In this document: positions 5,870-63,060 of the stretch, in pieces
Position numbering within the stretch: the first letter of the stretch is position 1
Layout: every line of letters begins with the position of its first letter
Source: Mizuhopecten yessoensis
Lineage: Eukaryota
DNA length: 64,000 bases
Assembly (NCBI RefSeq): GCF_002113885.1
Contig: NW_018406690.1
Span: 84,520 to 148,519 of the forward strand
Reading direction: 5' to 3'
Notes under the pieces: generated by a model
Databases searched by the model: none
Told to the model about the DNA's origin: nothing
What the model saw: the letters and a program-made list of their open reading frames with translations, nothing else
Translations under genes and position numbers: made by a program

Positions 5870-7318
5870 AGGCTAATTAGGGGATAGTACGTTGTTTTGA
5901 GTGGCTATACTGGCGATTAGAACATGAAATTTAAGTTTGAACTCGAGACCGCTAGGTCGAGAGTTTAAACCAAATTTCATGTTCTAATCGCCAGTATAGA
6001 CACGAAAAACAACGTACTATCCCCATTCTAACACACTTGAACAAATATACTACGCTAATATGTTTAGAAACATTGTATTTCCTTGTACAAAAGTACACAG
6101 TAAAATAATTTGTGACCCGAACTGGCGACGTGTCATACTGCAGCGGACCGACCAATCGGAAAGACGCTTTCAAAAGTCGGTCATTTGGCCCCGCCCATAC
6201 TGGCGAGCGCTCGATCTGTATGTTGACGAGGCGGAATATTTGGATTGTTCGTGAACGTCCTGTTACCAAAGTTTATACGACACATTTGGATTAATATTGA
6301 CCAAGTTCTTACATTTCCATGTCAGTATGCATACCAATCTGTGCTTATCGACAAAATCGGTGATTATTTGTATAGATTTGTGAAGAGTTTTGTGTAAATG
6401 CATACGACACATGTGAAATGTTTCATTTGATTTCGGATCTAAGTAGATGTCTTCACACGGATGGAACGAACGTTTCAGTAATAAATGGAGGTAAGAACAA
6501 GGAATGTGTACTTTTTACTTTTTAATTCATTCAACAAATACATTTCATCGGTCGTTTCTGTTCTGTTGCCTACTAGTCTTATCAGCGGGATTTCGCTAAG
6601 AGGCGAGCTTGACGCCATATTGTTTTAGTTTGAAACGGGGCGTGGCTTAAGTGCGATGGGAGGAGCTTAACACGATTGATCATGATTCTATCGCAGATTA
6701 GAACATGGTCCGTATCCAATCAAAACACGCGTTGCAAACGAATCGNATTTCCCCAGATTTGGGACTTCTGAAAACCATGGTTACCACATCAAAAAACACC
6801 AAAATATGCAAAAAATCATGATTTTTAACCCAGAATTTGACCCCCGCAAGTAGAATTGTTTTTCTTAAAACCTGTCTGAAATTAAATATCGCCTACTCGG
6901 TAACAGAAATACTCACGTTTTAGCATAGGTCATTCCGGTGGATTTTTCACAATATTTACACATGTGCTGAGTACAAAAATAGACTACATGAAAAGCTAGC
7001 TTTTGTTGTGTAGACACAGATTCGTAAATGCCCAAAATTGTAGTCTCAAACCAAATTCGACTTTTTTTTTTTTTTTAAATTATGAAGCCCACATAGTCCA
7101 CTTCATCATGTATATGCCAATTTTAGTGCTGATTTTTTTTTTTTTTAATTTTGATACATGTTATATTACAGGGGTTATTCATTGTATAAAAATATCACCC
7201 ATGGCCACCGTACGCTACTGTACTCTGCTACCTTGATCATGATTCTATCGCAGATAAGAACATGGTCCGTATCCAATCAAAACACGCGTTGCAAACGAAT
7301 CGTGTTAGAATGCATGTT
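5870..7318. mobile_element. Hairpin-headed non-autonomous element (Crypton-like) inserted in the 41-bp array
   Basis: Long imperfect palindrome 5880-6024 centred on CGAG-ACC-GCTA-GGT-CGAG. CATTCTAACAC (6024-6034) is inverted at 7302-7312. The satellite resumes at ~7319. Confidence 0.7.
6747..7232. mobile_element. Right end of a probable non-autonomous DNA transposon next to an N
   Basis: Begins after the N at 6746 and ends CTGTACTCTGCTACC|TTGA, followed by a second copy of 6676-6745. The family (Kolobok-like) is a guess. Confidence 0.4.
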
Positions 7319-7715
7319 AGTAGATTTTCTTGTACCATGACATCGGCTAAAGTATATAGGTAGGTTTTCTTGTACCATGACATCTGCTTATGTATATTAG
7401 TATGTTTTCTTGTACCATGATATCGGTTAACATATTTAGAAAGATCGTCTTGTACCATGACATCGGATAATGTTTTAACGTTGGTTTTCTTGTACCTTGA
7501 CATCGGCTAATGTATTTGTGTGATTCTCTTCTGCCATGACATCGGTTAATGTATTTAGGTAAGTCTTTTTGTACTTCGCAAAAGGTAGGTTTTCTTTTAC
7601 CAAGACATCGGCTAATGCATTTGGGTTGGTTTTCTTGATTAGGTAGGTCCTATTGTACATTGACGTCGGCTAATGTATTTGGGAAAGTCTTCTTTTACCA
7701 TGTCATCGATTTCAT
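7319..7715. repeat. 41-bp minisatellite, right part
   Basis: Same CTTGTACCATGACATCGG unit as 5345-5868. Confidence 0.9.
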
Positions 7716-8131
7716 GTTTTGTTACAATGAAGTGAATAGGCTATGTTGCTACTGAGTGAAGGAGATGTTACATGAGTCAGTGTTATACATCAGTGTAAAC
7801 GAGCTTTATTGAAACAACATCCATAGTCGATACTGATGCAAATATGATAATTAAATCAATCAACTTGGTTCGATTTTTAGATGAATTAGTTTAACGGTAT
7901 CTAAAATTCCAATTTGAAAACGACTTTCTATCATAAGATTTTTGAAAATAATATTTGCATTAAGGGCGAAATGTAAACAATAGGTATACATAGCAGTTAA
8001 TATTTGAAGTAGTAGTATGCGCCAAATGGGCCACTTCCAGGGAGATATTTGAGTGTTGTTTGGATTTCAAATACATTTAGCATCAATTAGCTTTACCTAG
8101 CTACAACAACTGAAAGTGTGCTGTGTATTTA

Positions 8132-8461
8132 GGAGGCACGGTAATCTAGTGATAGGACGCTGGGCTCGTGACCGAAGGGTTGCGGGTTCGAGTCACGACA
8201 CGGCACTGTGTTGTACTTTTGAGCAAGATACTTTACTCCGCTTGTTCCCTTCTACTCAGCTGTAAATGAGTACGTGGTTGGGCAGTGCTAGAATTGTAGA
8301 ATAATAGATGTGAGCGCCGAAATGGCAACACCGGCTGTATGCTCCCTAGGGAGTTGGGAAAGGTATTGGCTGGTTGCAAAGGCCAAAGGATAATAATTTG
8401 TGAACCGCTTTGAAACGATCTACGAACGAGGTTGTGTTAAATCGGTATACTTATTATTATT
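8132..8461 (+). mobile_element. tRNA-derived SINE, CORE-type
   Basis: tRNA-like head with B box GGTTCGAGTC, CORE-like body (TTGAGCAAGATACTTTAC...CAGCTGTAAATGAGTAC) and (TTA)n tail. Confidence 0.8.
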
Positions 8462-8782
8462 TTCTTTTTAATTTGCTATAAACGTTGTACAAAGTGTTTT
8501 ATAATGAACATTTTGAAAATCTCATGACCCCTGTTGACTCGCTTTTGTCTCCGATTGACTGGTTAAACATATGAGATAACGCTGTCGTGAATTGAAGACT
8601 AATTCAATATTCCCTGTATGAAGTAAATTAACCCTGCCTGTATACAGTGTGCTGAGTGGCTAAACTCGTTTTTATAAATAATCTTGTTTTTAATTTCTAA
8701 TTTCTTAAGTATCCCAATCCCACTGCACTCTGGTTTCTCTATATATAGTAACAGTAACCCCATTTACCTCCGTTTGTAGAAC

Positions 8783-8907
8783 TGTAAAACAGTTTGGCCG
8801 TACACTTCCGTTGATAGCTCAAGCGGGTATAGTGATAGTTTAGAAGTCTGAAGTTCGGGGTTCGAATCTAGGCCTAGCTCCGCTGTGTCTTTTTAACACC
8901 CAGAACA
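8783..8907 (+). repeat. Short tRNA-like dispersed repeat
   Basis: A-box-like TAGCTCAAGCGG and B box GGTTCGAATC; ends CAGAACA; similar to 19915-20041. Confidence 0.6.
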
Positions 8908-9699
8908 CTGTTGTTAATTATAAATTTGTATAGTTCATCTTTATATTATATATAGTTTCCAATACTTAGTGACAGTTTTGGGCAGTGGTACGTGGATCCT
9001 CCAAGCAAAGTATCAGGACAAGCACGTTTGCGGTCTCGCTCTAGACTGAAATCAAAGTGTTCGTATTAGCGAAGTTCTGCTCTAGACTAAAATCGACGTT
9101 TCAAGATTATCAAGTTGCGTTTTAGGTTTTTTAGGATTTTTTGAGGATTCCATGCAAAAATGCAACATTAATATTTTTTAGAAAAGTTGGTTTGAACAAA
9201 CAAGGACGATGATACACCATGGGATTCATAGCGACTAAGAGACACCTAAATCCTGCCTCCGTGTTAAAATGACATCAATTCACGTGTCGTCTGTCGCAGC
9301 TTCCACGACAGAGACTCGAGTTGATGGCGAACGTAGCTATCGAACGAAATGAAAAGCGTGTAGCATGGGGTATAATTATGTGAACAATTGAAAACGCGCT
9401 GTAATGGACAGGCCACACTTTGTGGTTTTCTTTGCTGTGCCAATCTAGCCGCCGAGGTGACAAACATTCCAAGTCATTTATTTAATTGGATCTGTGTTTC
9501 TGGTTTGATTACATCTGGCTATGTGTTTGAGGTATGCGGTAAGTGTGTGCAGGCCACGCTCCCTGTCTATACAGAAATATAAATCACTTCTCTGCTGTGA
9601 ACCGACCTTGTTTACGTCAGTATATAACGATGTCTAGCTATTTGAACAATATCTGCTAGAGGTGAAAGTTGCTCACATTTTGAGCTTGTCATTTCAGGA

Positions 9700-10755: not shown

Positions 10756-10875
10756 TAGTTCTAGTTCGCCTGAAGCAAAGTCTCAGTTCATCTATTGCAA
10801 ATGGCTTGTGTCCGTCGTTGTCCGTCTTGCATCGGCCGTCGTGCGTCCGTAAGAAAATAACATGCATAAGCACTA

Positions 10876-12139: not shown

Positions 12140-12236
12140 CACACATACACACACGCAAGCACACATACACACACGCAAGCAAACATACACACACGCAAGC
12201 ACACATACACACACGCAAGCACACATACACACACAT
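12140..12236. repeat. 20-bp CA-rich repeat
   Basis: ACACATACACACACGCAAGC, ~5 copies. Confidence 0.9.
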
Positions 12237-15360: not shown

Positions 15361-15589
15361 AATAACAAGATTAAAAACTAAATGACACGAACAAATACAT
15401 CCCACTCACAGGTACCCATCGTTTTGAATGCCTAGACAATCCTATAGCAGCAGTGTATATAGTAGCTGATAGGCTTTCAGGAAGACATAAGAATACCAGA
15501 CAAAGATCTTAATTTTGTTGTCATTATCTAATGTCTAATATAAAATAACATAGTGTAATTAAAAATATACTGTATTAGTTGAAATGATA

Positions 15590-16060
15590 TAAGACTCGTT
15601 CATGCCCAAGGTTGTAGGATAGGGAAATTCCACCTGAGGGGTTTTCAAGTCTGGTTAAACCCGTGGCTTTACCGAGGGTTTTGCCAAATTTGAAAATCCC
15701 GAAAATATCAATTTTCCCCCTTAGCTTTTTAGACGAAAACGAGTTAGCCAGACAGATTTAGCATATCCCATATTTGCAAACAATGTTTGCGGAAAAAGAT
15801 TAATCACATCTTTCCTACGTGTCGGTAAATATATCATTACATGTTTTAATTTCATCACGTCGCCTTTTCCGCATTGCGGCATCGGAGAGTTCCAAATTCG
15901 TGACGTCACGTCATTGTTGAGCCATTGTGACGTTACGTCACGTGAAATGGGGTGTAAGATAGAAATTTCCTACACCCCTTTCTTATCCTGGACAGCTCTT
16001 TCTCGCACATCAGACAGAGATATCCCACGTTATACCCCATGCTAGATTGTTCTATCTCGT
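15590..16060. mobile_element. Hairpin-headed non-autonomous element (Crypton-like)
   Basis: Palindrome ~15622-15718 centred on CGTG-GCTTTAC-CGAG. The head motif TGTAGGATAGGGAAATTCC recurs as TGTAAGATAGAAATTTCC at ~15953. Confidence 0.55.
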
Positions 16061-16671
16061 CCGATCTGTCTTGTACCTGTACGTGACATTTCGCGGAATT
16101 TTTATACTGCGATGTATTCATACGCACTAACTGCTTGAAATTGACAATTTGCAGTATAAATGTTCTGTTTTGTCGTTATATGTATTATACAGTTATGATG
16201 TTGTTAGATATTTGATGTTGTAGATAAAATATAATCTACACTGTGAAATACGTTGTAATCTATGTAAGGACGGACTACATTTTCACGCGGAAGCACTCAA
16301 ATGTAGCTTTAGTAGTGAAGAGGTCATTATCATTTGAGGCCCAAGGCGGGATACTTGTAGTTTTTAGCAAAATTGAACAGTTCTTTTCGAACTTAAAGGT
16401 GCGAGAAAAAAAATCAATTACCTGTAACTGAGCGAGATTAAAACTATCAGCTACAGTTTATACGGTTTGTAAGTCTTTGGCACTGCCATACGGAATATTC
16501 TCTCGCGTCAGCGATGTAACGACGCTTTTCATTGGTTAGTAACCATACGTCATGCATTTGCATTTTTTTCTTTTTCTTTCTTTTTCCCTACAAATTAAGG
16601 CATATCATAATCATATTGCAAAGATTTTGTATAAACAAATGAGCCGTGTGTTACTGGTTTGGAACTTATGC

Positions 16672-16820
16672 GAGTGAGGGAACACGAGTGAGGGAACACG
16701 AGGGAACACGAGTGAGGGAACACGAGTGAGGGTGAGGGAACACGAGTGAGGGTGAGGGAACACGAGTGAGGGAACACGAGGGAACACGAGTGAGGGAACA
16801 CGAGTGAGGGAACACGAGTG
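16672..16820. repeat. 14-bp purine-rich minisatellite
   Basis: (GAGTGAGGGAACAC)n with slippage variants. Confidence 0.93.
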
Positions 16821-18029
16821 CAGGTGTATGTGTAATGGTTTCTGTCCACAATGTGAATAATAAGAGTTACCTTTCCATGGCTCGGCGCATAAAGGAGGTG
16901 GTATATGTTCACGGAATTAGTTGTATATACTTTGTGTTATTGTCTAATGTTAAGTGAAAACATTTTAATCTAGCACAATAATTGTCAGTTATTATATAAC
17001 TTAAAAATGTATCAGTTAATGAATTGAGATAATGTTCAATTCCGAATTATGATGTGGTTTAAATGTTTGAGAATCTATTTTGTAATGCTATGTATATTTT
17101 GCAAATTAAACATATTTCAGATAATTGTGTTTATTTTTGTTACAATACAGTATAATGAAAGTACCGTACTAAACCGTTGATACCAGCATAGCACGACACA
17201 GTATGATGAAACGGACAAAATGTTTTTCTTTGAAATCCGAAAGGTTGAATGATTATCTAAAACCTGATGACTCAGTAATGGATACGTTTGATACAATCTG
17301 AATCATAACGATAATGTTTTAAAGTATATGTATGACGTTGAAAAGCTTAGCGTGTTGTTCCTATATTAAGAGCAAGCAAATGTAAATTCAGTTAACCCTC
17401 GATATAATGCCATTTTATTCAGTATACCCCCTCACTAACCGCCAATATATTTCAAGGTAACCTTTAATCATTTTCTTAAGAATTCTGATTTATTTTCCCT
17501 CAATTTATCGCCAAATTTCTTTATAACGCCTGTTTTTCTTCTTTCCGTTTTTTGACAAACGGTGGCAGTAAAAAGAGGGTTTCCTGTACAAATGAACAAA
17601 TTCGGTAATAAATTTCTTGTTTTGTGTAAACAAAATCAAATGTACATCGTCAATGATAGAGTTAGGAAATACAAGTCTGTTGAAACTGTATACAGAGACA
17701 CAAGTGTGATCCGTTTTGTGCACATTTTATACTTTAATTTATTTGAATAGTATTGACAAAATGTCCACGGGTTACATACATGGTTGATTCAAGCACGACT
17801 AGACATTATGATTTTACATGATATGACTTAAACAACCTGTTAAACTCACTGGCATTAAAGGGACATCACGCTGAACAGATAGAATTGCTAAAGTTGCACG
17901 TGATATGTTTTAAGCATCAGCGAAAACATATTTCGGTACTTGTAAAGGAAAATGTGTTAAAATAATTTAAAAACAACAATGAAAACCTTGGTTTACAAAA
18001 GATAGTCATAACGAAAATAGAGGTTCTCC

Positions 18030-18525
18030 AAAGAGTAATTGTTGGTTATCATGTTTATCTCGAATTAGTTAATTTTGAAATTGTATTAAGACGTGATATT
18101 TTACCGAGTGTCTTCTAAAATTTGAATTAATTAACGAAAGTAAGATAAACATGATAATCAACCATCACGAGTTTAGGGGCCTTTTCCTCTCACAACGTCT
18201 AAATGTTATATTTAGATAACCATCTGTTTCTTTTGGAAATACATTACTCGTGTTTTCCAATCGGGGGAAAATGCCATGAGTTATGACGTCACAATGGAGG
18301 ATGACGTCGCAAAGCATTGTTACTTGACGTGATAATTTGAAGATGGCCTATGAAATAAAGTCCATGGAGTTACCCACTAATCTCGTTCGTATGGAGGTAG
18401 TACAAGCCAATAAATCTTCGATGGTAACACGTGTGTAGAAAAAAAGCTGTTTCGCTTGTCATAACATAACACGCTGGTCATACGAGAAATAAACTCATTG
18501 GAGGGTGTCATACTCATTTAATAAT
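18030..18525. mobile_element. Hairpin-headed element, degenerate
   Basis: Palindrome 18041-18162 (GTTGGTTATCATGTTTATCT ... AGATAAACATGATAATCAAC) with a CGTG...CGAG centre. Confidence 0.5.
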
Positions 18526-18774: not shown

Positions 18775-19080
18775 AATCAATAAACGGCAGACATACTGAT
18801 ATAACTGCAACGGGTGTCGTACACAAACCGAATGGGGCGCTTATGTCAAGCTCATTCAGTCTGTCTTCGACACCTGATGCAGTTATGTCAATAGGTCTGC
18901 AACATATGTTCAGTTTTTGCTTATAACTTCGCTTTTATATATAAAATGCAATAAGGATTGATCCCTTAAAATACAAATTTGCCCGTCGTTATCGGCGAGC
19001 CAGGTGAACAACAACAGAGGAATATCTGACGGCTGGGTGTGTTTCTAACGTTTGTCGGAAGAATAGCACAACAGTGCTAA
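18775..19080. mobile_element. Hairpin-headed element, degenerate
   Basis: Palindrome 18787-18900 (GCAGACATACTGATATAACTGCA ... TGCAGTTATGTCAATAGGTCTGC). Confidence 0.5.
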
Positions 19081-21164: not shown

Positions 21165-23314
21165 GTATACTAGTCTATTAAGTTGTCGTGGAAAATTGTT
21201 CACGTCCATTTTAAATTCTAGGTTAATAAATTGGTCCGAATCATACGATGTTATTGCAGATGCACAGTTTGGATTTCGCACTGGACTTAGTACTGTAGAT
21301 GCGATTTTCGCTCTACATTCAATTATAACTTAATAATCTAATTTTTCCTATCTTACCCATAATATATTTTTTTGGTATATATCGTATATACCTAAAAAGA
21401 AAAACAACTGATGACGGAACTACTTTTTACACTTCAGAATCCAAAATTACAACGCAGCTTTTTTTTAGCGCAATTGTTTAGTTTACGTAAAAATTAAATA
21501 TTCTTTAACTGTGCATTTACAACGTGTTTGCCTACTTTCTTTAAATTATATTATAAAGAATGCCCAATATTTTGTTTTGGTATATACGGTATATACCGCT
21601 TCGCGGATTTATGCAAAGTGCACATTTTTTTTCGATATATACCATATATACCAAAACAAAATCTTGGTGATTCCTTAAATCTCGTAGTGAAAATAAGCGT
21701 TTGTATTGCTGCTTTGTTGATTTCCGCAAAGCGTTTGACTATGTAAACAGGGTAAATTTATGGTATAAACTATCAAAGTTAGGAGTCAGAGGCAAGCTTC
21801 TGCACATCATACCATCAATATATAATCATGTAAGATCTTGTGCAAAATTTAAAGGTTGTTTATCTGATTATTTTGTCAATGATATCGGTTTATTGCAAGG
21901 CGAAATTTTGTCGCCGATACTTTTTTTCCATGTACGTTAACGACTTTGAGTCTGCTTTTATCTCAAAATGTAACCAATGATACGATTTTGAAGAATTAAG
22001 CCTATTCCTTATGTTATATGCTGACGATTTAGTCTTGCTTTCGGAAACTGTTGAAGGCTTGCAGGAATTACTGGATAATCTTATTTATTGCGAGCAATGG
22101 AAATTAACTGTTAATAGTGAAAAAAAACGAAAGTTGTGGTAATGCGTCAAGGCGGGAAAATTCGAAATAATGAAACATGGACTTACCATGCAAATAAGCT
22201 TGATTGTGTTGACCAATTTTCTTACCTCGGTGTAAACTTAAGATACAATAACAAGTTCAATATCATACAGAAACATTGTCAGATCAAGGACGTAAAGCCA
22301 TGTTTGCTTTATTTTCTAAGTGTTCAAATATGAGTCTTAATTAAAAAAACCATGCTGTGTTGGTTTGCTACCTACGTTAGTAGAATATTGTACTACTCTT
22401 GTGAAGTGTGGGGTTCGACCAAAGGTTTGGACATTGAAAATGTACATTTAATTTTTTGTAAGAGATTACTTAAAGTTAAACAATCTACAAATAATGTAAT
22501 GGTATACTGGGAACTTGGTCGCTTCCCTTTAGAATATACAAGGAGGTATAGAATAATTAAATATCGGTTTGAACTGCTCGACACGAAAAATTGTAATTTG
22601 AATACTGCATATGATTTTTTATTAAAGAAAAGCACCGGTGTTTATTTCAATTGGGAACACTATGTATAAGAGTTGCTATGTACTCTTGGTTTCGGTGAAG
22701 TATGGCTTAGCCAATCACCATCGAACGCTAAATCCATTTTACCTTGTATACGTCAAAGAATTTTTGATCAAGCTCAACAATACTTGAGAGGTTTATTAGA
22801 GAATTCCTCGAAATGATTTCTATATAAGCATATTGTAAACCATTTTTCCATTCAGTTTTATTTAACTAAGTACATGCCTAAGAAATATAGAATATGTTCA
22901 ACAAAACTTCGTATGGCAATTGAAACCGGTCGTTATAGAAATATCGAACGGAATAGGAGATATTTTGCAATTTGTAAGTCGACTACTGAAGTAGAAGACG
23001 AATATCGTTTTTTATTAATATGTTATATGTACAACGACTTTAGAAGTCAATATATCAAAACAATAATATTGGCAAAAGCCTTAAATGTTTAAATTAATAC
23101 AGTGAGTGTGTGTCAATGTGTCAATAACAACAAGGAATTCAGACGTCTCGGCAAATTTATTTTTGAAGCAAATAAGATAAGAGCTGTATTTCTTTAACTC
23201 GTACTCCACTTTTGTCTTGCTGTTTCACATCCTTATTATATATTGTATGTAATATGTTATATGTACTCATGGGCTGTAAGGCCTACAGTCAATAAATTGA
23301 ATTGAATTGAATTG
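21165..23314 (+). mobile_element. 5'-truncated, frameshifted LINE (RTE-X-like)
   Basis: RT motifs QFGFR, FVDFRKAFD, QGEILSP and YADD (~22016-22027); C-terminal ETGRY...VEDEY; tail AATAAA(TTGAA)n. Confidence 0.93.
21331..21676 (-). mobile_element. 346-bp hairpin-headed element inserted in the LINE RT
   Basis: Palindrome ~21570-21661 containing CCGCTTCGCGG; TTTTGGTATATA recurs at the other end. Removing the element restores the RT frame SIIT|KSRSENKRLYCCF. Confidence 0.85.
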
Positions 23315-25610: not shown

Positions 25611-28600
25611 AAGATTCAAGATTTTTTTATTACGCTCTGACACACAAAGTGTGTAACAAGAGGTCAAACAAAATAACATCAATCAAAATAAAACATGACA
25701 GAGAGAGTAGATTACGCATGGACAGATTAAGCATTATTTCATAGACAGATTCAGCATTATTTCTTAGACAGATTCAGCAATATTTCATAGACAGATTCAG
25801 CAATATTTAATAGATAGATTCAGCAATATTTCATAGATAGATTCAGCAATATTTCATAGATAGATTCAGCATTTTCATAGATTCAGTAATATTTCATAGA
25901 TAGATTCAGTAATATTTCATAGATAGATTCAGCAATATTTCACATTGTTTGATGTACATATGTATCAGATGTATTGTTACAAAGTAACAGTAAGGTTATA
26001 CATGAACAGATTCAACATTATTTTCTTACATGTGAAACAGTAAGTTTACACATAATTATTTCATACATGTGAAACAGTAAGATTACACATCCTCATTTCA
26101 TACATGTGAAACAGTAGTATTATACAAGGACAGATTTAGCATTATTTCACACATGTAGATTACATGTGAACAGATTCAGCATTAGTTCACACGAGTGAGA
26201 GTAGATTACACATGAACAGATTCCGCATTAGTTCATGCATGTGACACAGAAGAATATATATGACCAGATTTATCAGCATTAGTCATATATGTATTGGATA
26301 CTCAATTTTCACAGCAAATTATCTTCACTGCCATAATCATAATGCAAAGTATAGTATTTTTGACATACTGATTTATTTCAATTGTTATTTTTTTATAATT
26401 ATTTGCAGTTTTACAAGAAATGTAATAACCCTTTTGATTAATCGTTTATTACATATTGTGAACATTCCTTTCATTTTATCAACATTTGGATTGGTGTAAT
26501 AATATTTTGGAATAAATGTTTCCCTAATCTGGCGTATGGATTCTTGTTGACATTTAAACAAATAATGAAATTCATCTCCTGTTTCATTTCTATTACACAA
26601 AGTACATTCTCTTTCCTCTCGAGGAATTCCCATCCAACGGCCAGTTTCCAGGGGCAGCGGAAAGTTTGACGAGCGAAATTTGCAAAACACAACACGATCC
26701 CTCTTGTTTAATTGAGTTAAGTAATTTTCAAAACCAAAATTAGATTTAAATAATAGATAATTTTGTCCTCTACTACTTTTTTTCGATATCGGCATACCAC
26801 TTTCGAATAAACTGGTCATTAAGCTTTTGTGTTATAACATGTTTAAGTTTTTGTCGTTCTAGAGTAGTCACTTTTTGAGATGTCCAGATATATGTCAACC
26901 CTAGATCATTTAGTGTAGTTTTGATAAAATTTAGCCACTTCGAGTGAAATGCGCCCGTTTCGTGCATTGCATGTATAATATTATATAACTGACTCGATAC
27001 TTTACCATTTTCTGTTATTAGTTTGTACCAAAATAAAATCATTCTATTTTAATAGTATTTTCTAAAGGAAAACGTCCCGATTCTCCATATACCATATAAT
27101 TAGGCGTAGATTTCCTTGAATTGAGAACTTTTTTATAAATTTCAAATGTATCGTTTCCAAGAGGGTAATATTTTCGAATCCCCATATCTCTGACGCGTAT
27201 AACAGTATAGGCAATATTAATGTATCAAAAAGTTCAAACTGTAGGTCTACTGGTAAATTGATATTTCTGATTTTCCTATATAAAGCAAATAATGCTTTCT
27301 GGGCTTGTTCAGCTAGTTTCTTTTTCGCCTTACCAAAGTTCCCAGTATAGTTAAACAATAACCCAAGGTACGAATAAGAATCTATAATTTCAATTTCCTC
27401 TCCGCAAAGCATAAATGTACTATTGATTTTCGATTTTCGTTTGAAAAGACAACTATTTTAGCATTTGTATTAACATGTAATTTCCATATTTTACAATAAT
27501 CGCCGAAGACATCTAAAGCTTTCTGTAGACCCTCGGGCGATTCTGCCAGTACAACAGTGTCATCCGCATATAACAAAATAAACAATTTTAGGTACATTCC
27601 AATACAATTTTGACTAAGATTATCAATATCTTTGAGACATTTTACCTCATTTTTAGACAGGAACTCCTCTAGATCATTCAAGTAGATCGAAAATAAAAAT
27701 GGCGATAAATTTTCCCCTTGTTTTAAACCGATATTGCTCGTGAAGAACTGAGTCTGCTCGTTTCCATTTTTTACACATGACTTAGTATCAGTATATAAGT
27801 TATAGATTACATTTAGTATTTTGCCATTGATATTGCTTCTCAGCATTTTTTCCCAAAGTCCAACCCTCCACACTGTATCAAAGGCTTTTTTAAAGTCAAT
27901 GAATGAACAATATAACTTTTTATTATAGGAGAAATACATTGATATTAGTGTTTGCATTACAAATATATTTTCTGTAGTAGAATAACCTTTCCTAAAGCCA
28001 GCTTGGCTTCCATGAATAAGATTTATTTGATCAGATAATTGATTCAATCTATCATTTAGTATAGATGTAAAAAGTTTTCCCAAACACGATACTAAAGTTA
28101 TTGCTCTATAGTTGTCAAGGTCATTAATGTCGCCCTTGTTTTTGTATATTGGTTTAATTAGCCCCACAGTCCATGACTTAGGTATTATACCAGTATCTAA
28201 TATTGTATTAAATAATTTGACATATATATTTATAAAAGGCTCTAAAGAATATTTTATATGTTCATTCAGGATCTCATCGTTTCCACATGCTTTATTATTA
28301 CTAAGATGTTTAACAGATTTCCTTATCTCTGTCTCAGTTATTGGACCATTTAAAACATGGTCATACATATTTTCATCTAATGAAGGTAACTGAAATTCTT
28401 CCACATCACTGTTATCAGTATTAAGATTTTTTAAATAATTGAAAATTTTATCTATTTTTTAATCTACTTTGATATTTTTCCTCGTACAATCTATTTTGTT
28501 CAAGATATCCCAAAACTTTTTAGGATCACTTTTTGAGGTTTTTCTTATTTCTCCCTCCATTTTTTCTTGGAAGTTTATATAACATTTTTTCATAGTATTA

Positions 28601-44743: not shown

Positions 44744-44931
44744 ATTCCGTCTTTGCGTATTGCAGAGTTATCTTCACTTGGGAGCAGGTATTGATTGTTA
44801 CGTCATTGGGTTGTGCGAGAAAATTACGTCGTTTTCTCAAAAACTGATGACGTTACTATCACAAACAAGTGACGTAACAATCAATACCTGCTCCCAAGAG
44901 AAGATAACTCTGCAATACGCAAAGACGGAAT
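44744..44931. mobile_element. Young palindromic MITE
   Basis: ~60-bp near-perfect inverted arms ATTCCGTCTTTGCGTATTGCAGAGTTATCTTC...GTTACGTCA. Confidence 0.85.
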
Positions 44932-45150
44932 ACTTCAGACGAGAGTAAAGCACCACCACCTGTTACACATCCTGATGGTTTTTGGTCCCAGTTGGATTTT
45001 GGATTTCAGGTTTCAAAATTCTGCATCTGTGAATTCTCGGATTTTTACGCAAACTACATAGGTCTCAGAAGGAATAAATTAACAACGATATAGTCCAATA
45101 TGGGAACTGGATCTGTACAAACAAATATTCATTGGATGCATATTTATTAA

Positions 45151-49607: not shown

Positions 49608-52600
49608 AGCCAAGGTCACAGTATACGTAACAGCAGATCCCATTGTGTTACCTCTGAGGCCAAGGTCACAGTATACAGCAGATCCCATTGTGAAACCTCT
49701 AAGGCAAAGGTCACAGTATACGTAACGGCAGATCCCACTATGTCAGATCCCATTGTGTTACCTCTGAGGCCAAGGTCACAGTATACAGCAGATCCCATTG
49801 TGACACCTCTGAGGCAAAGGTCACAGTATACGTAACGCCAGATCCCATTGTGAAACCTCTGAGGCCAAGGTTACAGTATACATCAGATCCAATTGTGAAA
49901 CCTCTGACGCCAAGGTCACCGTATACGTAACCGCAGATCCCATTGTGAGACCTCTGAGGCAAAGGTCACAGAATACATCAGATCCCATTGTGAAACCTCT
50001 GAGGCCAAGGTTACAGTATACAGCAGATCCCATTGTGAAACCTCTGAGGCCAAGGTTACAGTATACAGCAGATCCAATTGTGAAACCTCTGACGCCAAGG
50101 TCACAGTATACGTAACCGCAGATCCCATTGTGAAACCTCTGAGGCAAAGGTCACAGTATACGTAACCGCAGATCCCATCCCATTGTGTAACCTCTGAGGC
50201 CAAGGTCACAGTATACGTAACGGCAGATCTCATTGTGAAACCTCTGAGGCCAAGGTCATAGTATACAGTAGATCCCATTGTGTAACCTCTGAGGCCAAGG
50301 TCACCAGATCCCATTGTGTAACCTCTGAGGCCAAGGTCAGAGTATACAGCAGATCCCATTGTGAAACCTATGAGGCCAAGGTCACAGAATACGTAACGGC
50401 AGATCTCATTGTGAAACCTCTGAGGCAAAGGCCAGCAGATCCCATTGTGAAACCTCTGAGGCCAGGGTCACAGTATACAGCAGATCCCATTGTGAATCCT
50501 CTGAGGCAAAGGCCACAGTATACGTAACGGTAGATCCCATTGTGAAACCTCTGAGGCCAAGGTCGCAGTATACGTAACGGCAGATCCCATTGTGAAGCCT
50601 CTGAGGCAAAGGCCACAGTATACGTAACGGTAGATCCCATTGTGAAACCTCTGAGGCCAAGGTCACAGTAAACGTAACGGCAGATCCCATTGTGAAACCT
50701 CTGAGGCTAAGGTGACAGTATACAGCAGATCCCATTGTGAAACCTCGGAGGCCAAGGTCACAGTAAACGTAACGGCAGATCCCATTGTGAAACCTCAGAG
50801 GCCAAGGTCACAGTATACGTAACGGCAGATCTCATTGTGTTAACTCTGAGGCCAAGGTCACAACCTCTGAGGCCAAGGTCACAGTATACAGAAGATCCCA
50901 TTGTGAAACCTCTGAGGCCAAGGTCACAGTATCCAGCAGATCCCATTGTGAAACCTCTGAGGCTAAGGTGACAGTATACAGCAGATCCCATTGTGAAACC
51001 TCGGAGGCCAAGATCACAGTATACGTAACGGCAGATCCCATTGCGAAACCTCTGCGGCAAAGGCCACAGTATACGTAACCGCAGATCCCATTGTGAAACC
51101 TCTGAGGCCAGGGTCACAGTATACAGCAGATCCCATTGTGAATCCTCTGAGGCAAAGGTCACAGTATACAGCAGAACCCATTGTGAAACCTCTGAGGCTA
51201 AGGTCACAGTATACAGCAGATCCCATTGTGAACCCTCTGAGGCCAAGATCACAGTATACGTAACGGCAGATCCCATTATGAAACCTCTGAGGCCAAGGTC
51301 ACAGTATCCAGCAGATCCCATTGTGAAACCTCTGAGGCCAGGGTCATAGTATACAGCAGATCCCATTGTGAAACCTATGAGGCCAAGGTCACAGGATACG
51401 TAACGGCAGATCCCATTGTGTAACCTCTGAGGCAAAGGCCACAGTATACGTAACGGTAGATCCCATTGTGAAACCTCTGAGGCCAAGGGCACAGTATACA
51501 GCAGATCCCATTGTGAAAACTCTGAGGCCAAGGTTACAGTATACAGCAGATCCAATTGTGAAACCTCTGAGGCAAAGGTCACAGTATACGGCAGATCCCA
51601 TTGTGAAACCTCTGAGGCTAAGGTGACAGTATACAGCAGATCCCATTGTGAAACCTATGAGGCCAAGGTCACAGGATACGTAACGGCAGATCCCATTGTG
51701 AAACCTCTGAGGCAAAGGCCACAGTATACGTAACCGCAGATCCCATTGTGAAACCTCTGAGGCCAAGGTCACAGTATACAGCAGATCCCATTGTGAATCC
51801 TCTGAGGCCAAGATCACAGTATACGTAACGGCAGATCTTATTGTGTTAACTCTGAGGCCAAGGTCACAGTATACAGAAGATCCCATTGTGAAACCTCTGA
51901 GGCAAAGGTCACAGTATACGTAACGGCAGATCTCATTGTGTTAACTCTGAGGCCAAGGTCACAGTATACGTAACGGCAGATCCCATTGTGTTAACTCTGA
52001 GGCCAAGGTCACAGATTACGTAACGGCAGATCCCATTATGTAACCTCTGAGGCCAAGGTCACAGTATACGTAACGGCAGATCTCATTGTGTTAACTCTGA
52101 GGCCAAGGTCACAGTATACGTAAAGGCAGATGCCAATGTGTTAACTCTGAGGCCAAGGTCACAGTATACGTAACGGCAGATCCCATTATGTAACCTCTGA
52201 GGCCAAGGTCACAGTATACGTAACCGCAGATCCCATTGTGTAACCTCTGAGGCCAAAATCACAGTATACAGCAGATCCAATTGTGAAACCTCTGAGGCAA
52301 AGGTCACAGTATACAGCAGATCCCATTGTGAAACCTCTGAGGCTAAGGTCACAGTATACAGCAGATCCCATTGTGAAACCTATGAGGCCAAGGTCACAGT
52401 ATACGTAACGGCAGATCTCATTGTGAAACCTCTGAGGCAAAGGCCACAGTATACGTAACGGTAGATCCCATTGTGAAACCTCTGAGGCCAAGGTCACAGT
52501 ATACAGCAGATCCCATTGTGAAACCTCTGAGGCTAAGGTCACAGTATACAGCAGATCCCATTGTAGCAGATCCCATTGTGAAACCTCTGAGGCCAAGGCC

Positions 52601-53638
52601 ACAGTATACGTAACGGCAGATCTCATTGTGCAACCTCTGAGGCAAAGGCCACAGTATACGTAACGGTAGATCCCCTTGTGAAACCTCTGAGGCCAAGGTC
52701 ACAGTATCCGTAACGGCAGATCCCATTGTGAAACCTCTGAGGCCAAGATCACAGTATACAGCAGATCCAATTGTGAAACCTCTGAGGCCAAGGTCACAGT
52801 ATACGTAACGGCAGATCCCATTGTGAAACCTCTGAGGCCAAGATTACAGTATACAGCAGATCCAATTGTGAAACCTCTGAGGCCAAGGTCATAGTATACA
52901 GCAGATCCCATTGTGAAACCTCTGAGGCCAAGGTCATAGTATACAGCAGATCCCATTGTGAAACCTCTGAGGCCAAGATTACAGTATACAGCAGATCCAA
53001 TTGTGAAACCTCTGAGGCCAAGGTCATAGTATACAGCAGATCCCATTGTGTAACCTCTGAGGCCAAGGTCATAGTATACGTAACGGCAGATCCCATTGTG
53101 AAACCTCTGAGGCAAAGGTCACAGTATACGTAACGGCAGATCTCATTGTGAAACCTCTGAGGCCAAGGTCATAGTATACGTAACGGCAGATCTCATTGTG
53201 AAACCTCTGACGCCAAGGTCACAGTATACGTAACGGCAGATCCCAATATGAAACCTCTGAGGCCAAGGTCACAGTATATGTAACGGCAGATCCCATTGTG
53301 AAACCTCTGAGGCAAAGGTCACAGTATACGTAACGGTAGATCTCATTGTGTTAACTCTGAGGCCAAGGTCACAGTATACGTAACGGTAGTATACAGCAGA
53401 TCCCATTGTGTAACCTCTGAGGCCAAGGTCATAGTATACAGCAGATCCCATTGTGAAACCTCTGAGGCCCCGATCACAGTATACAGCAGATCCAATTGTG
53501 AAACCTCTGAGACCAAGGTCACAGTATACGTAACGGCAGATCCCATTATGAAACCTCTGAGGCCAAGATCACAGTATATGTAACGGCAGATCCCATTGTG
53601 AAACCTCTGAGGCCAAGGTCACAGTATACGTAACGGCA
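49608..53638. repeat. ~4-kb minisatellite of mixed 45- and 50-bp units (~85 copies)
   Basis: CAGATCCCATTGTGAAACCTCTGAGGCCAAGGTCACAGTATAC followed by AG or GTAACGG; periods of 45 (49981 to 50026) and 50 (50101 to 50151). Confidence 0.97.
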
Positions 53639-53784
53639 TTATTAGTCAAGTACATATATTGAAAATGTCATAGACAAGTTTGTATAAAGGTCAAGATTGC
53701 TTTTAACATTTACAAAAGAGGTATGTGTCAATGCTCTAAGGTGTCAAGGACAAAGGCATTAACGAGTTTTGCTATGCATAGATA

Positions 53785-54581
53785 TTTAAGGTCACCTGAA
53801 CTTTGCTCAAGTGACCTATTCTGATCGCTTTCAATTCATCATTGTGTGTAAACTTTTTTTTATTTTTGGCTTCTTCTCAAGAACCAATGAATGGGTTTCC
53901 ACCAAACTTGGTAGGGGCGATCCTTGGTAGGAAAGGATATCAAATTGAAAAGGGGAAATTACCCAATATTTGAAAAAAAATCTTCTTCTTCAGACCAGGA
54001 AGTCCTAGAATCAAATTTTCTAGATGGATGGGCATGTCTTAAAGTGCTCTATCAAAATTGTAAATTTCAATATCCCTGGGTCATTCAACCCCCCCTAGCT
54101 ATAGGGACAAAGTAACGTTTACGATAGTTTATATAGGGAAATAACACTTTTGAGTATATTTCATATATTTTCCTGTGAAAATGATTCCAACTTATTCGGA
54201 ACGATTATCATGGGATGGCAGTTTGATGGTATGAAAATTAAAACCCTGATCCCTCTCCATTGAACAGAAGGGCAGGGCTCAAAGGAGGGAAATTTGGTAA
54301 AATTTCACAAATCTTCAAGAGGCCCTAGAATAAAATTCTCTTCATGGATGGATATGTCTTAAGGTGCTCTTTCAAAATTTTAAGTTTCATAACCCCCAGG
54401 TCATTCACTCATCCCCTGGGGAAGGAGTGAAGTTTTCTGTAGTTTATATTGGGAAATAAAAGTTTTGACTATATTTCATGTATTTTTAGCTGGAAATGAT
54501 CCGAAATTGGCACAAATTTCAAAATTCTTTTTCTGCTTAATGATTCACTCAGGTGACTGTTAAGGCCCTTAGGCCTCTTGT
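53785..54581 (+). mobile_element. HINE
   Basis: 5' TTTAAGGTCACCTGA; 3' TCAGGTGACTGTTAAGGCCCTTAGGCCTCTTGT; internal repeat. Confidence 0.85.
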
Positions 54582-58038: not shown

Positions 58039-58161
58039 TGAAACAGGGGAGGAAAAATGCACAGCCTGACTGCATGGGGTCTCTGTCAAGATCTAGACAG
58101 ACACTTTACCCATCGAGCTATACCTGGTCGCGGACGATTGACCAAGTCCAGTTCCGCTACA
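58039..58161 (-). repeat. Short tRNA-like repeat with TG...CA ends
   Basis: Minus strand reads TGTAGCGG...GGTATAGCTCGATGGGTAAAGTG...CCTGTTTCA; the B box is eroded. Confidence 0.4.
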
Positions 58162-59528
58162 TATATTTAATCATATTCCATGAATTGCATCTAGTTGCAC
58201 TTCTTTGAGAATATGATTTTAGGATAATTTGTTTTATACCATCCTAAATGTTTATGGTATGCATTTGAGGATTGAAATCATTACAATCCAATCCCTAAGT
58301 AATTTTGAAAATATCAAAGAATTTTCCATTTAACTTTCTTGGTTTGTTTCTCTTGGTTCATGATACATTAGAAACAGCTATTGTTGCAGGAACAAGGTTG
58401 TATTTTCTGTGTTTACAAATGCAGTTCCTAGCTTCAGGTGCCAACTGTTGATTGGAAACATTTCAGAATTTCCGTCGAAGTTTACATTTGATGTCAAAAC
58501 GTTATTGGTCTTAAACACTGTGACAGAAAGACCCGAACAGCTTTTGATTACAAATATGTGTAAGTGTTCTTTGTGTTATATTTTGAAAACAACATTTTAA
58601 GTTGGTAAGATTATTTCCAAGTTGTTATAAGGAAATGCAAATAGATTTAGTTTTATTTCACATATTTATTAGCAAAGAACATATGGCTATACATGTTCAA
58701 TCTAACAAAAAATTCTTTGATATTTCATGTGCTAAGATTGTGCATATCAAGATTCCCCATTTTACCACTGCCAAAAACTGTAGCTTAGTGTTGGAAAGTT
58801 GTTTTTTGGCTATTTTTTTTAAGCTATTTGGTCAGCAGAAGCGTCCTGGCCAAGCTGAGCTACGGTTATAATCTTGAGGAAGTTAAGGGGAGGTAACTGT
58901 ATACAGGAAAAACACAGTGCAGTGTGATATGGGTCCTTAATTTCATGATACTGTATATTATGATATTGTGATGTGTATGTTACTTGCAATAATCCAGTGC
59001 TTAATTTAGTAATAAGCCCACCCTCTCCAGCATCAGTAAACAGGTTGCAATATCTAACCCATTCACCCCTGAAATTTCATAATGAACTATTCCAACAGTC
59101 GGGAATTGGAGGAGTTCAAATGTGTCTTCAGGGGTGAATGAGTAAATTAACAGATGATTGTCCCAAATATAACCTCTTGTAGGACTTGCTTTTCCACCTT
59201 CTTGGGTCACTGTTATTATTATTATAACATTATAAACAACCCTTCAACACAGATATGGTCATTAGGGCCAATTAAATGTCTCTGGGATATCACAAATATA
59301 GTCCCCATTGCTGTAAATAAAAGGTTGGTGTTATATTGCTCTACAGATTTCATATCTTATCCAATTGTTGGGATGTTAATTGTAATGGTATGTAGGGTCT
59401 ATCAAACATGCCATTCACATTTTGTTTTTGTGTAGGGGTGGGGTAGGGGTGAGGGCTGGTGGACACATATGTATGGATAAGCAGGGGCTATAATTAAAGT
59501 TGGCTCTTGGCTTACAGTAATATCTTCA

Positions 59529-60827
59529 TTTTTAGACCACCATCATCTGATGGTGATCTACACCCTGCGTCCGTGGTCCGTCCTTAAACAATTCTTGTTA
59601 TCGGTATTTCTGAAGAAGTGCTAGAGGGATCTTTCTCAAATTTTATACATAGATTCCCTTGGTCCTTAGCTGTGCAAGGCAACTTTTGAGACTGATCGGA
59701 TAAACAACATGGCCGACGGGCAGCCATCTTGGATTTTGATAGTGAAAGTTTGTTATCGCTATTTCTCAGGAAGTATGGTAGGGATCTTTCTCAAATTTTA
59801 TATGTAGGTTTTCCCCTTGTTGTTACAGCAGTGCCTGAAATGGACGGTCTCCCACTTGCCAATGGAGATTAAAGTCTTGCTCGGATGACCAAAAGTTGTC
59901 AAAAGTGAGGTAGTCACTGGCCCAACAAAAATAGTTTGGGTGACTGTTGAAAGATTTATGAATAAAAGAAATTATAGTTCCTTCCACATTTACTGGAGGG
60001 CAGGACATTTTTTCAGTTGTCCTTACTTCGATTTGAAACGAACTGTCTGTGATTTAGAAAATGTGACGATTTTTTTTCAGATTTTCTATATAAAATATAA
60101 ACTTGAGCCAGGATGTCTTCTTTGAGGTGCGAGTTTTGTGTATTTCTTTGGGAAACATGCATGTCAGGTTTTAACTAGGGTTGAAGAATTAAAAATATAA
60201 TGTTTTATTCTGTTTTACATATTACAATGATTGTCATGTTATATGTAATTTAAATGTGCTGAAGCATTGCGTTAAATGCTGTGGAAATATTTCTTCCCAA
60301 AATTATTTGGGCCACCAATATGTCATTTGGGATCCTTTATTGTTCACGTTTACTTTTGAAACTGATCAGTTAAACAAAATGACCTACCGGCAGCCATCTT
60401 CGACTTTTGACATTGAAGGTTCGTTAGTACTATTTCTCAGGAATAACTTGAGGGATTTTTCTCAAATTTGATATGTAGGTTCCCCTTGATCCCTCGTGTT
60501 GTGCATGTAATATTTTGAGACTGATCATGAAAAACAAAATGGCTAAAGGAAGAACTAAACAGATCTTTCTCATATTGCAATGATCGATTCTATTTCTTTC
60601 ACATTAAGTACTGTACTAGTAAATATGTGAAATGACAAACTCACTATGAAGGTTGGCTTTCATACACATCAGTATTAAGTTTAGATCAAAAGTTACCTCA
60701 AGGTGCATTTTCAGTTAACATGACTCGATCAAACAGATAGAGGAAAGAAGAGAAAAGATCGAACTGACAAAGAAGTAATGAAGATGGTACAATGGTGGGC
60801 GCCAAGATCCCTCTGGGATCTCTTGTT
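59529..60827 (+). mobile_element. HINE with internal repeats and an interrupting insert (~59820-60340)
   Basis: 5' TTTTAGACCACCAT plus GTCC microsatellite; 3' ATGGTGGGCGCCAAGATCCCTCTGGGATCTCTTGTT; recurring GGGATCTTTCTCAAATTT. Confidence 0.8.
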
Positions 60828-61754
60828 TTTCTTAAATGCTCAGAATTGAGAAAATGGTTCTGGTTCTTAATTGTCAAAGAACAATTTAAGAATTAAAAGA
60901 AGTAAATTTTTAGTGTAGGTAATTATATAATCCCTGTGATATTCATGATATATGATTCTTCATACAGTTTATGTTTTAAATAATATTGTAAATTATAAAC
61001 CTCTCGTTTGTTAATGCTCGTATTGCCATGTAAATGTAATTACCTGGTTCAAATAAAAGAAAAATTAATATTGAAATCATTATGTGCTTGAACAGTATGG
61101 ATGTATAAATCAGTCATTTATATAATTATAGAGTAAGTTCTCTACACGTTATTGGTAAAAATTACGACTTTGTGAAAATTAACCTTCCGATCACAATGTA
61201 ATTAAATGAAATTCCATAATGTATATATGATGGTCACAAATTATACGAGATAATGGTGTGCAATGATCTATCAGTTATGGGTTTGTCTGTGTATTCCGGG
61301 GCAGTGATCTGACACAGACTGCTAATCATCGTAACCTTGTACATGTGTGGTCAATTCATTGTGAATGGATAAATAGGAATTGAGGGAGATTGCCGAGCAG
61401 CAGGCTGGCTTAGTGGTGGCTGTCCAGCTATTTAGCCTTGTCACCAGCCTACGAGTTATCCAGCATGGCTTGGCATCAATACACTGACTACATTCCTTCC
61501 CCCCAAACTACACTGATGAACAGTCAATAACAGCATTTACATTATTGATTGAGAAAACAAATCTGATGCATTTTCTGGGAAACTTGGTTACTTTATTAAG
61601 CTGAAGAATGTGTGGGTAGAATTTCCTAACATCAAAAAGGTTCATCAGACAATGATGCAACGATGCTTTATTTGAAAATGATAATTTATTCAGTTAGTCA
61701 ATAACCTTATTTTATCCAATGACGCCTTAGTTTTTCTTTGATCTTTTCTTGACG

Positions 61755-63060
61755 ATATATTGCATACCGTGCGTTATTTCAGATATCACATATGTGCTAT
61801 CTGAAATATCACATGGCTTGTCTGATTGGTCCATGCCACAGTCTGGAGGCGGTGCCCATTTTAATGTGGGCGTGACAAATCAACAAAGACACGAAAAACT
61901 TTGCAAAAAAATTTAATTAAATTTAGACACCGTAAGTGTAAAAAACAGTATTTCTCTATCAAGCACCAATAATGTGTTGGTATTATATTTTTCACGCTAC
62001 GTTACACTTTTTTTGTTTTCTTGTGTTTCGGTCTTGACCTTCTTGTTCGCACTTTTCCCACACTCTAAAGCCCCGCTTATTTCCACCTGTTGCGCCTCGG
62101 ACGGTCTCTTGTAGGCACGGACAGCGGTACTGCGGTGTCCAGTCCTTTCCATAATCAACTGTTCATCAAAACCTAATGAAGGTAGAAAATAAATGGACAT
62201 TTTTATCGTGTAACGTTTAGGTTAATGTCAATGCGTATAACATTATGCGTATAACATTAAAGTCAAATTAAAAACAAATCACATAAAAATTAATATTTGT
62301 TTCATCACTACATTGTATTTAAAAAATATATATATATACACATGCATTGCGGAAAAAGTAAATACCTTATCATAAATGGGAGAATATAAACAAAATAAAT
62401 AACGCGTCTGTAATTTAACTTCAAATATCGTGTTTATGGATTATTTAGGATTTATGTTATTTATGGACATCGAAAGTTATTTTCACATACGAAAAAGAAC
62501 ATGTATTCTATTTTACAGATTATGAAAAAACATATACACACGCTAATATTTTCGCGATTCACAATTATGTTTAGACACACTTTAATTTCAGACTTACCGG
62601 CTTGGTAAAGAGATGTGGCGCATGTTCTCTTTCCGTTGTTTTTCACAATTGCATTCAGTTTATTTACTCCAATCGGCTGTGTTCCAAATTTCCAACCGGC
62701 AAGGGGTCTCATGTAAAATGGACCCTCTCCAACAGTCTGTAGATATTCTGTGTAAATATCATATAAACACCGGGGACGTCATGCCATGCCTGATCCGCCA
62801 TCATTAACACCTGAGACAGAAATGAATACTGTGGCAGGATGGGTCAGAAAGTGGCGGGAAAATATCAAAGTGATTACTTGACAGATCCTGATCAGCTGTA
62901 TAGCGCCGCCCCTTGACACGTGGGTGACAAAAACCTTGGCGGTCATTGGAATGAATACTGTGGCAGGATGGGTCAGAAAGTGGCGGGATATATCACACTC
63001 GTCCTGACGGACTCGTGTGATATATCCGATACATCACTCGTGCACATTATGTATCTATTA
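61755..63060 (-). mobile_element. Internally deleted Crypton-type (tyrosine recombinase) DNA transposon
   Basis: YR coding remnant inside; terminal hairpins at 62986-63027 and ~61779-61812. Confidence 0.8.
61997..62778 (-). pseudogene. DUF3504/Crypton tyrosine recombinase C-terminal remnant, two exons (62778-62598 and 62172-61997)
   Basis: Spliced product RPRCLYDIYTEYLQTVGEGPFYMRPL...QPIGVNKLNAIVKNNGKRTCATSLYQAGFDEQLIMERTGHRSTAVRAYKRPS. Phase-1 intron GTAAGT...CATTAG at 62597-62173. The NHS motif and the N-terminus are missing. Confidence 0.85.

Follow-up and report, generated by a model that had tools for sequence, protein, structure and literature searches.

Why do repeats of unrelated sequence in one stretch of scallop DNA open with the same kind of hairpin, and could a transposon's recombinase recognize it? 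The stretch is 64,000 nt from Mizuhopecten yessoensis (RefSeq assembly GCF_002113885.1, contig NW_018406690.1, positions 84,520 to 148,519 of the forward strand), which we will call the window. It is AT-rich and dense in repeats. CryptonA elements encode a tyrosine recombinase (YR) with DUF3504 and phage-integrase domains, and an earlier note on the window had reported that the remnant of such an element and a non-coding element share a hairpin core, in which two direct repeats of CGAG enclose a short stem and a GNNA loop. The note proposed that autonomous and non-autonomous Cryptons have a structure-encoded recognition site in common. We found that four repeat families in the window open with an imperfect hairpin of 100-170 nt, with CGAG mirrored on both arms:

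5874-6745, plus strand: family 1, an 872-bp non-coding element, with its ends set from an alignment of 11 loci
15580-16009, plus strand: decayed copy of a hairpin-headed family; hairpin at about 15620-15715, with the tip CGTG-GC-TTT-AC-CGAG at 15661-15677
18015-18379, plus strand: copy of a 365-bp hairpin-headed family; starts with AATAGAGGTTCT; hairpin at about 18020-18190
61712-63061, minus strand (so it reads from 63061 to 61712): family 2; 1.35 kb, derived by internal deletion from a 2.3-kb Crypton

CGAG hairpins are found both at the ends of elements that carry a YR gene and in derivatives that lack it, which supports the proposal of a common site. We give a probability of roughly 60% to the view that these hairpins act in cis as the ends of CryptonA-type transposons from one mollusc lineage and of their far more numerous non-autonomous derivatives, and that they would be recognized as a folded junction.

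Both of the cores that the note described are present. CGAG-ACC-GCTA-GGT-CGAG is at 5944-5961 on the plus strand, in the tip of the 145-nt hairpin that spans 5880-6024, and CGAG-TCC-GTCA-GGA-CGAG is at 62998-63015 on the minus strand, within a 42-nt palindrome (62987-63028). The core pattern matches eight times in the window, where 0.03 matches are expected, and six of those eight matches are in a single satellite at 16671-16818 that has no hairpin. (The units of this satellite are of the CGAGTGAGGGAACACGAG type.) Across the M. yessoensis genome (988 Mb), the scan that the note called for gave 621 matches, versus 254 with a reversed control, and family 1 accounts for most of the excess. The GNNA loop does not hold as a general signature: it is true of two families only, and other loops read TTT, GTA, TCA, or similar. 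As for the idea that the hairpin arms are unrelated, the stems do differ among families and species, while the CGAG blocks and the end motifs persist.

The note also read the directly repeated CGAG as a mismatch bubble below the loop. The mismatch is real, as tandem G·A and A·G, but it is not an open bubble, as C:G and G:C pairs close it on both sides. In every minimum-free-energy fold (with DNA parameters), the C and the final G of each CGAG are paired and GA faces AG. By nuclear magnetic resonance of a human promoter repeat, two antiparallel CGAG tetranucleotides form a C:G pair, two sheared G:A pairs, and a G:C pair, which is known as the CGAG block (PMC10085684). In the AUTS2 promoter repeat the blocks are consecutive (PMC10085684), whereas in the transposon hairpins they are isolated and 18-30 bp apart. 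On the complementary strand, the mismatches would be T·C and C·T, which makes the strands of such a palindrome non-equivalent.

Family 1 gives the clearest view of how the hairpin relates to the ends of the element. We count at least 621 candidate copies in the genome, at 96-98% identity, and in the alignment of 11 loci the hairpin starts about 6 nt from one end of the element. Its parts are:

5880-6024, plus strand: head hairpin, 145 nt; CGAG at 5944-5947 and 5958-5961 encloses a 3-bp stem and a 4-nt loop
6025-6034, plus strand: inner repeat ATTCTAACAC, complementary to the family's final 10 nt, GTGTTAGAAT
7233-7311, plus strand: isolated second copy of the family 1 tail

The head hairpin has a minimum free energy of -65.8 kcal/mol with DNA parameters, and its block folds as C:G, a 2x2 GA/AG loop, and G:C. 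(In the window, an N at 6746 breaks off this copy, which leaves about 9 nt at its end unreadable.) At 3 of the 11 loci, family 1 is present as head-to-tail dimers, and in these natural dimers the stem is predicted to run on through the joint for another 10 bp, apart from a 2-nt bulge where the two copies meet. Solo copies have the head xTAAT/TAGGGG... and the tail ...GTTAGAAT/x, where the slash is the edge of the element. AAT is at both ends of solo copies and is present once per dimer joint. A satellite with a period of about 47 bp (window 5700-5870) adjoins the head of family 1. It is not part of the element, because the flanks of other copies differ.

The two other hairpin-headed families also have many copies in the genome. 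The family at 15580-16009 is very abundant, with at least 3,641 candidate copies. The note had listed a degenerate core at 15662, and this copy is indeed a decayed member of a CGAG family: the intact tip, CGAG-GC-TTT-GC-CGAG (the 15-mer CGAGGCTTTGCCGAG), occurs 517 times in the genome, versus 0 for the control. The tip often occurs in arrays with a period of 330-620 bp, and it is also found at another locus that we analyzed (L059). On contigs C690 (1504863-1506111), C1602 (41304-42102), and C1538 (197631-199092), exact copies of the 15-mer are evenly spaced, 350-620 bp apart, which points to tandem arrays of short hairpin-bearing units. When we compared the first 100 positions of the 15-mer to gene matches, one was beside a 640-aa YR family (C704) and one was 1.7 kb from a decayed RepHel fragment (C210), which is within chance because there are thousands of copies of the tip. 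The family at 18015-18379 has at least 1,843 candidate copies, at 76-82% identity. It too belongs with the CGAG families, as the note had suspected from a degenerate core near 18091, but the mirrored slot that reads CGAG in other copies is lower in the stem (at about 18033 and 18166) than the CGTG...CGAG tip that the note had picked out. The left-arm CGAG has decayed in the window's copy, while other copies have CGAG on both arms.

Family 2 links the hairpins to a recombinase. Its parts in the window are:

62987-63028, minus strand: inner part of the head hairpin; CTCG on the plus strand at 62998-63001 and 63012-63015
62822-62860, minus strand: subterminal direct repeat; its second copy, at 62950-62988, overwrites the outer right arm of the hairpin here
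62598-62712, minus strand: upstream exon of the YR remnant; ends in ...KRTCATSLYQAG, then gt; matches the YR gene of the long form
61997-62170, minus strand: last exon of the YR remnant; GHR...Y (catalytic His/Arg and Tyr nucleophile)
61767-61816, minus strand: 50-nt palindrome near the tail
61712-61723, minus strand: tail terminus GTCATTGGATAA, complementary to the sequence directly after the head hairpin in the consensus

There are about 20 copies of family 2, at 82-93% identity, and most of them are 1.35 kb, like the window's copy. The 2.3-kb form is present at three loci (including L045/L046), and its frameshifted pieces of open reading frame (ORF) match DUF3504 (3e-10) and, weakly, the N-domain of QRICH1. 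A Pfam search of the window's own ORF pieces gave no match, so the assignment of this copy to DUF3504 comes from the longer copy, L045. The note's identification of a YR remnant was correct: the window's upstream exon matches the YR gene of the 2.3-kb form, which carries DUF3504. The window's copy retains two exons, with a gt...ag intron between them, and the C-terminal GHR...Y of the catalytic domain. The consensus hairpin of family 2 is about 105-115 nt, begins at base 2-3 of the element, and has two positions where CGAG is opposite CGAG, one in the outer stem and one at the tip. A short subfamily has the outer block only. The core that the note saw at the head of this element is the tip block. 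It is only part of the hairpin, since the window's copy lost the outer right arm to the subterminal repeat; the outer block survives as a third CTCG (63037-63040), opposite an arm that has been replaced. The layout is the same as for family 1, with the far end pairing just inside the hairpin. The orientation of the gene relative to the hairpin is inverted compared to the other families.

To see such an element intact, one has to look outside the window. A DUF3504 search of the scallop genome gave at least 383 candidate loci. Among them is a family of 2,156-bp elements (family C), with at least 10 copies at 98-99.9% identity, whose only ORF of 100 aa or more is a 502-aa YR (Pfam matches to DUF3504, 1.5e-33, and Phage_integrase, 3.7e-10). 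R155, R381, H404, Y413, and K279 are invariant among 8 homologues, and H378 is present in 7 of the 8. We read R155, R381, H404, Y413, and H378 as catalytic residues, given their positions in the usual YR motifs. On this reading, the 502-aa protein has the full R-K-H-R-H/W-Y set, while the window's copy of family 2 keeps only the C-terminal GHR...Y. A look-up of the exact 502-aa protein gave no match.

The far end of family C is a 132-nt hairpin that reaches the terminus. It has two CTCG/CTCG positions, which are CGAG/CGAG on the other strand, and one subfamily has a third CGAG block at the hairpin tip. At one family C locus, other individuals have an empty allele (in reads and contigs; DNA run X6), so family C was active recently. 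In other words, the evidence for mobility includes both near-identical copies and a presence/absence polymorphism. In DNA contigs, the depth over the family C hairpin is about 8 times that over the rest of the element, which fits with many hairpin-bearing derivatives. In one case (L053:3580-3850, contig C5265), a copy of family C and an inverted partial copy meet head-to-head at the tip of the hairpin. A fourth scallop YR family (344 aa; about 2.1 kb; copies 99% identical) has a perfect hairpin with 25-nt arms and no CGAG block; at L057:6183-6259 and L054:3940-4040, this family has repeated AAACTGTCCAATAT motifs.

Do the same ends accompany related recombinases in other animals? Homologues of the 502-aa YR, at 40-60% identity, are found in bivalves, octopus, and corals, and we compared nine loci from seven sources. 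A hairpin of 100-170 nt with 1-3 CGAG blocks lies 350-500 bp downstream of the YR ORF in Pinctada imbricata, Dreissena polymorpha, Mercenaria mercenaria, Mytilus edulis, and Octopus sinensis. The same downstream hairpin with CGAG blocks is present in a contig from the TARA ocean metagenome and in its Logan twin. We found no CGAG blocks elsewhere in those 62 kb. Some arms of these blocks read TGAG or CGAA, as CpG decay would give. The stems vary between species. What persists is the head motif, which reads ATA-TAGAGGAT on the CGAG strand, and, after the hairpin, ATTCT-T/A-TTTAT. A complementary far end, TTTTATCACA..., is found in Pinctada, Mercenaria, TARA, and Octopus, where it is 140-355 bp upstream of the gene; in Dreissena it reads TTATGCTT. 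The complementarity clearly exceeds that of shuffled sequences only in Pinctada, Dreissena, and TARA. The Dreissena locus is a 3,107-bp tandem dimer with three single occurrences of the 7-nt ATTTATT: in the left flank, at the joint, and at the right end. Such a pattern is characteristic of a crossover at a shared core and not of a target duplication. The note had asked for a test of whether such hairpins co-occur with DUF3504 genes. Across the loci analyzed, the genome coordinates, and the other species, they do: CGAG hairpins are at the ends of two YR families of the scallop, and they lie downstream of the YR gene in five further mollusc genomes and in one metagenome contig.

Putting these families together gives a consistent architecture. 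On the CGAG strand, the element starts with a conserved TAG-R-GGAT or TAGA and goes at once into an imperfect hairpin of 100-170 nt. The hairpin holds 1-3 blocks of CGAG opposite CGAG, often with one that encloses the tip, and the blocks are spaced 18-30 bp apart. In families 1 and 2, as well as in Dreissena, Pinctada, Mercenaria, TARA, and Octopus, the final 8-15 nt of the element can pair with the bases directly interior to the hairpin, so in head-to-tail copies the joint sits in the lower stem, beside a small bulge. The joint is within the extended stem in every family with data. The note's comparison to integron attC sites is borne out at the level of geometry, in that the folds of natural tandem junctions put the joint inside the stem. 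The tandem joints also match the junction that would be expected in a circle.

How might these ends work? We suggest that the element leaves as a circle; for the 2,156-bp family, the predicted joint is ...CTCTATATAT followed directly by TTATTATATAAT.... We infer that the recombinase recognizes this junction as folded DNA, either as a hairpin in a single strand or as an arm of a cruciform. Strand exchange would then occur at the short common core near the base of the stem, as for the integron integrase at attC. The CGAG blocks, in which sheared G·A pairs would stack on just one of the two strands, might tell the enzyme which strand it is bound to.

There are precedents for this in bacteria. Integron attC sites (recognized by IntI) and the attP site of CTX phage (recognized by XerCD) are imperfect palindromes that a tyrosine recombinase recognizes as a folded strand, with non-canonical positions that mark one of the strands and a crossover near the base of the stem. 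The attC site is also split on integration, with a few nt at the far end of the unit, and it forms head-to-tail arrays. Our comparison of the present elements to attC covered the geometry: a split palindrome, a joint in the lower stem, and strand-specific irregularities. The attC and CTX systems are bacterial and use unrelated subfamilies of recombinases, and attC has extrahelical bases where these elements have G·A blocks. We saw no integron platform (attI and promoter) with these elements. A stronger version of the idea is that animal Cryptons of this lineage recombine as folded single strands or cruciforms, as a eukaryotic counterpart of attC and CTX; that the G·A blocks select the strand; and that the short-period hairpin arrays are cassette-like products of site-by-site integration. 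This is possible, but we hold it only tentatively.

The elements have much in common with the CryptonA group. They have a single YR gene with the DUF3504/phage-integrase fold and no reverse transcriptase or DDE transposase, they lack terminal inverted repeats and have short direct repeats or microhomology at their ends, and the non-autonomous copies outnumber the autonomous ones. Unlike the Cryptons that have been described, they have at one end a conserved hairpin of 100-170 nt with CGAG blocks, and at the other a sequence that can pair just inside this hairpin. In a 2011 survey, terminal repeats were not found in the Cryptons of animals (PMC3212892). Hairpins and palindromes go unmentioned in a 2026 paper on DUF3504 CryptonA elements, which describes the terminal repeats as variable (PMC13465315). 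In text searches of the literature, whose scope did not include Repbase entries, we found no published description of hairpin or palindromic ends for Cryptons, so this appears to be a previously undescribed end structure on a known type of Crypton.

If we are right, this matters in several ways. To our knowledge, no end structure has been described for animal Cryptons so far, which makes them hard to annotate. Non-autonomous Cryptons could be recognized by three features together, all simple to search for: the TAGRGGAT head, the long CGAG-block hairpin, and the complementary far end. In the scallop such copies number in the thousands, and without this signature they would pass for foldback repeats of no known class or for miniature inverted-repeat transposable elements (MITEs). 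Ideas about how Cryptons move reportedly still come from a single model from 2003. The mechanism now becomes experimentally testable, by way of a possible preference of the 502-aa recombinase for the folded CGAG strand. If the enzyme has this preference, structure-specific and strand-selective tyrosine recombination of the integron/CTX-phage type would also exist in animals. DUF3504 domains have been domesticated in vertebrate genes (ZMYM2-4, QRICH1, and KCTD1), and these domains would gain a candidate ancestral ligand.

Several observations weigh against the idea of folded Crypton ends. The orientation of the gene relative to the hairpin varies between families. The nearest-neighbour energy model favours the CGAG strand by just 0-6 kcal/mol, although this model captures the difference between the strands poorly. 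We saw no end-to-end circle joint of family C in reads or contigs, but these were mostly contigs, which drop rare forms. One insertion of family C is flanked by a direct duplication of 42-49 bp of host sequence (L049:4075-4123 and 6273-6320, contig C143), where the empty allele has one copy, and a simple crossover by a recombinase does not explain this. In Porites coral, the hairpin is 160 bp downstream of the YR and its CGAG is paired with CTCG, so there is no block. (In Porites lutea, L064:2859-2951 and 4512-4650, there are hairpins on both sides of the YR gene, both with GTACGATTTTT, and again CGAG is in Watson-Crick pairs.) Finally, the layout of the ends is also known from Helitron2 (PMC3627910).

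These points bear on three other explanations. The one we take most seriously, though we consider it unlikely, is that the recombinase uses a conventional short duplex site and that the hairpin is conserved for another reason: as a primer or origin for replication of the circle, for termination or regulation of transcription, or as a trigger or decoy for silencing by small RNAs. The common cores of 3-7 nt could by themselves serve an ordinary YR crossover, the coral relative has retained a hairpin that lacks G·A blocks, the hairpin is 3' of the gene in most families, and solo hairpins are roughly 8-fold more abundant than element bodies in DNA contigs. However, the position of the hairpin is fixed to the terminus of the element and not to the gene, which is inverted in family 2; the joint lies inside the extended stem wherever it could be checked; non-coding derivatives retain both the hairpin and the complementary far end; and raw RNA reads do not cover the hairpin. 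By contrast, we give almost no credence to the idea that these are unrelated foldback repeats with CGAG by chance or from a CpG-related bias. The pattern was defined after seeing two instances, and the window also has hairpin repeats without CGAG (21333-21680 and 44744-44932). But in a strict census of mirrored words (6/6 outer and 3/3 inner flanking pairs; 357 kb), the only recurrent non-palindromic 4-mers were CGAG/CTCG (14 cases), GAAT (17), and TGAC (4), and the GAAT words were mostly satellite repeats in the relaxed listing. (The relaxed census was swamped by satellites, so the strict census and the shuffles are the usable ones.) Block shuffles of all of the analyzed sequence, with relaxed criteria, gave 1 case of CGAG/CTCG in 5 rounds, or 0.2 per round, versus 43 observed. 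Chance would also not give the 517 versus 0 occurrences of the tip 15-mer or the recurrence of the motif next to YR genes in other species, and this last result already contradicts the explanation.

The remaining explanation is that these are rolling-circle elements of the Helitron2/Helentron kind, moved in trans by a Rep/helicase, and that the YR genes are captured passengers. They do share with Helitron2/Helentron and HINE/DINE-1 elements an asymmetric terminal inverted repeat by way of the terminal hairpin, tandem arrays, and abundant non-autonomous copies. As in Helitron2 (PMC3627910), a small palindrome lies near one terminus, and that terminus pairs just inside the hairpin at the opposite end. 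Also, head-to-tail arrays are present, the flanks can be read as insertions between two T's (which is possible but not required), and there are about 50 RepHel loci in the scallop genome. Nevertheless we rate this as very improbable, because compact units of 2.2-3.1 kb in seven species have only an intact YR, with conserved catalytic residues; two YR clades that are only about 35% identical both carry CGAG-block ends; and the palindromes of Helentrons are much shorter than these hairpins. Helitron2/Helentron elements encode a Rep/helicase, have palindromes of 5-20 nt that lie 8-35 nt from the end, insert at TT, and have T runs (PMC3627910, PMC4067079), while here the hairpins are 100-170 nt and reach the terminus, and the ends have no T runs. 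The 7-nt core that the Dreissena element has in common with its target also argues against it. The earlier note had itself named descent from Helentron or DDE elements as the outcome that would count against a Crypton system. What we find, in the elements whose ends could be read, is a YR gene only (one ORF in the 2,156-bp element and just the YR in other species' units) and no reverse transcriptase, DDE transposase, or Rep/helicase. There are no terminal inverted repeats, no long direct repeats, and no fixed target duplication, and the ends and the flank have just 3-7 nt in common (AAT in family 1, TAA in family 2, and ATTTATT in the Dreissena dimer). We had also considered that the window's YR piece might be a gene fragment captured by a Helentron, given its exon-intron structure and Helitron2-like ends, and dropped this in light of the 2.3-kb form, the intact 2,156-bp family, and the pattern across species.

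The window has other palindromes and repeats. The note had listed hairpin-headed elements at 18787 and 21570. The first is an imperfect palindrome (18787-18900) of which we found no other copy in the genome, so it is unique and not a transposon family. The second is a genuine hairpin-bearing repeat without the CGAG block:

21333-21680, plus strand: 348-bp repeat with a terminal hairpin at 21554-21677; no CGAG block and no terminal inverted repeats

Paralogous empty sites for this repeat have an overlap of 4-6 nt (TTAA+), and it is uncertain if it belongs with the CGAG hairpins. At 44744-44932 there is a 189-bp element that is a single long palindrome (79-nt arms), with at least 2,893 candidate copies at 96-99% identity. 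We considered it as a member of the CGAG class and rejected it: it is all palindrome and is a young foldback MITE of another kind. The region from 50000 to 54000 has higher G+C (0.45-0.49) and several minus-strand ORFs of 138-274 aa; the three that we tested (274, 170, and 146 aa) have no match in Pfam. On the minus strand at 27382-28404, a 340-aa ORF has an RVT_1 domain (6e-34) and is probably the remnant of a non-LTR or other retroelement.

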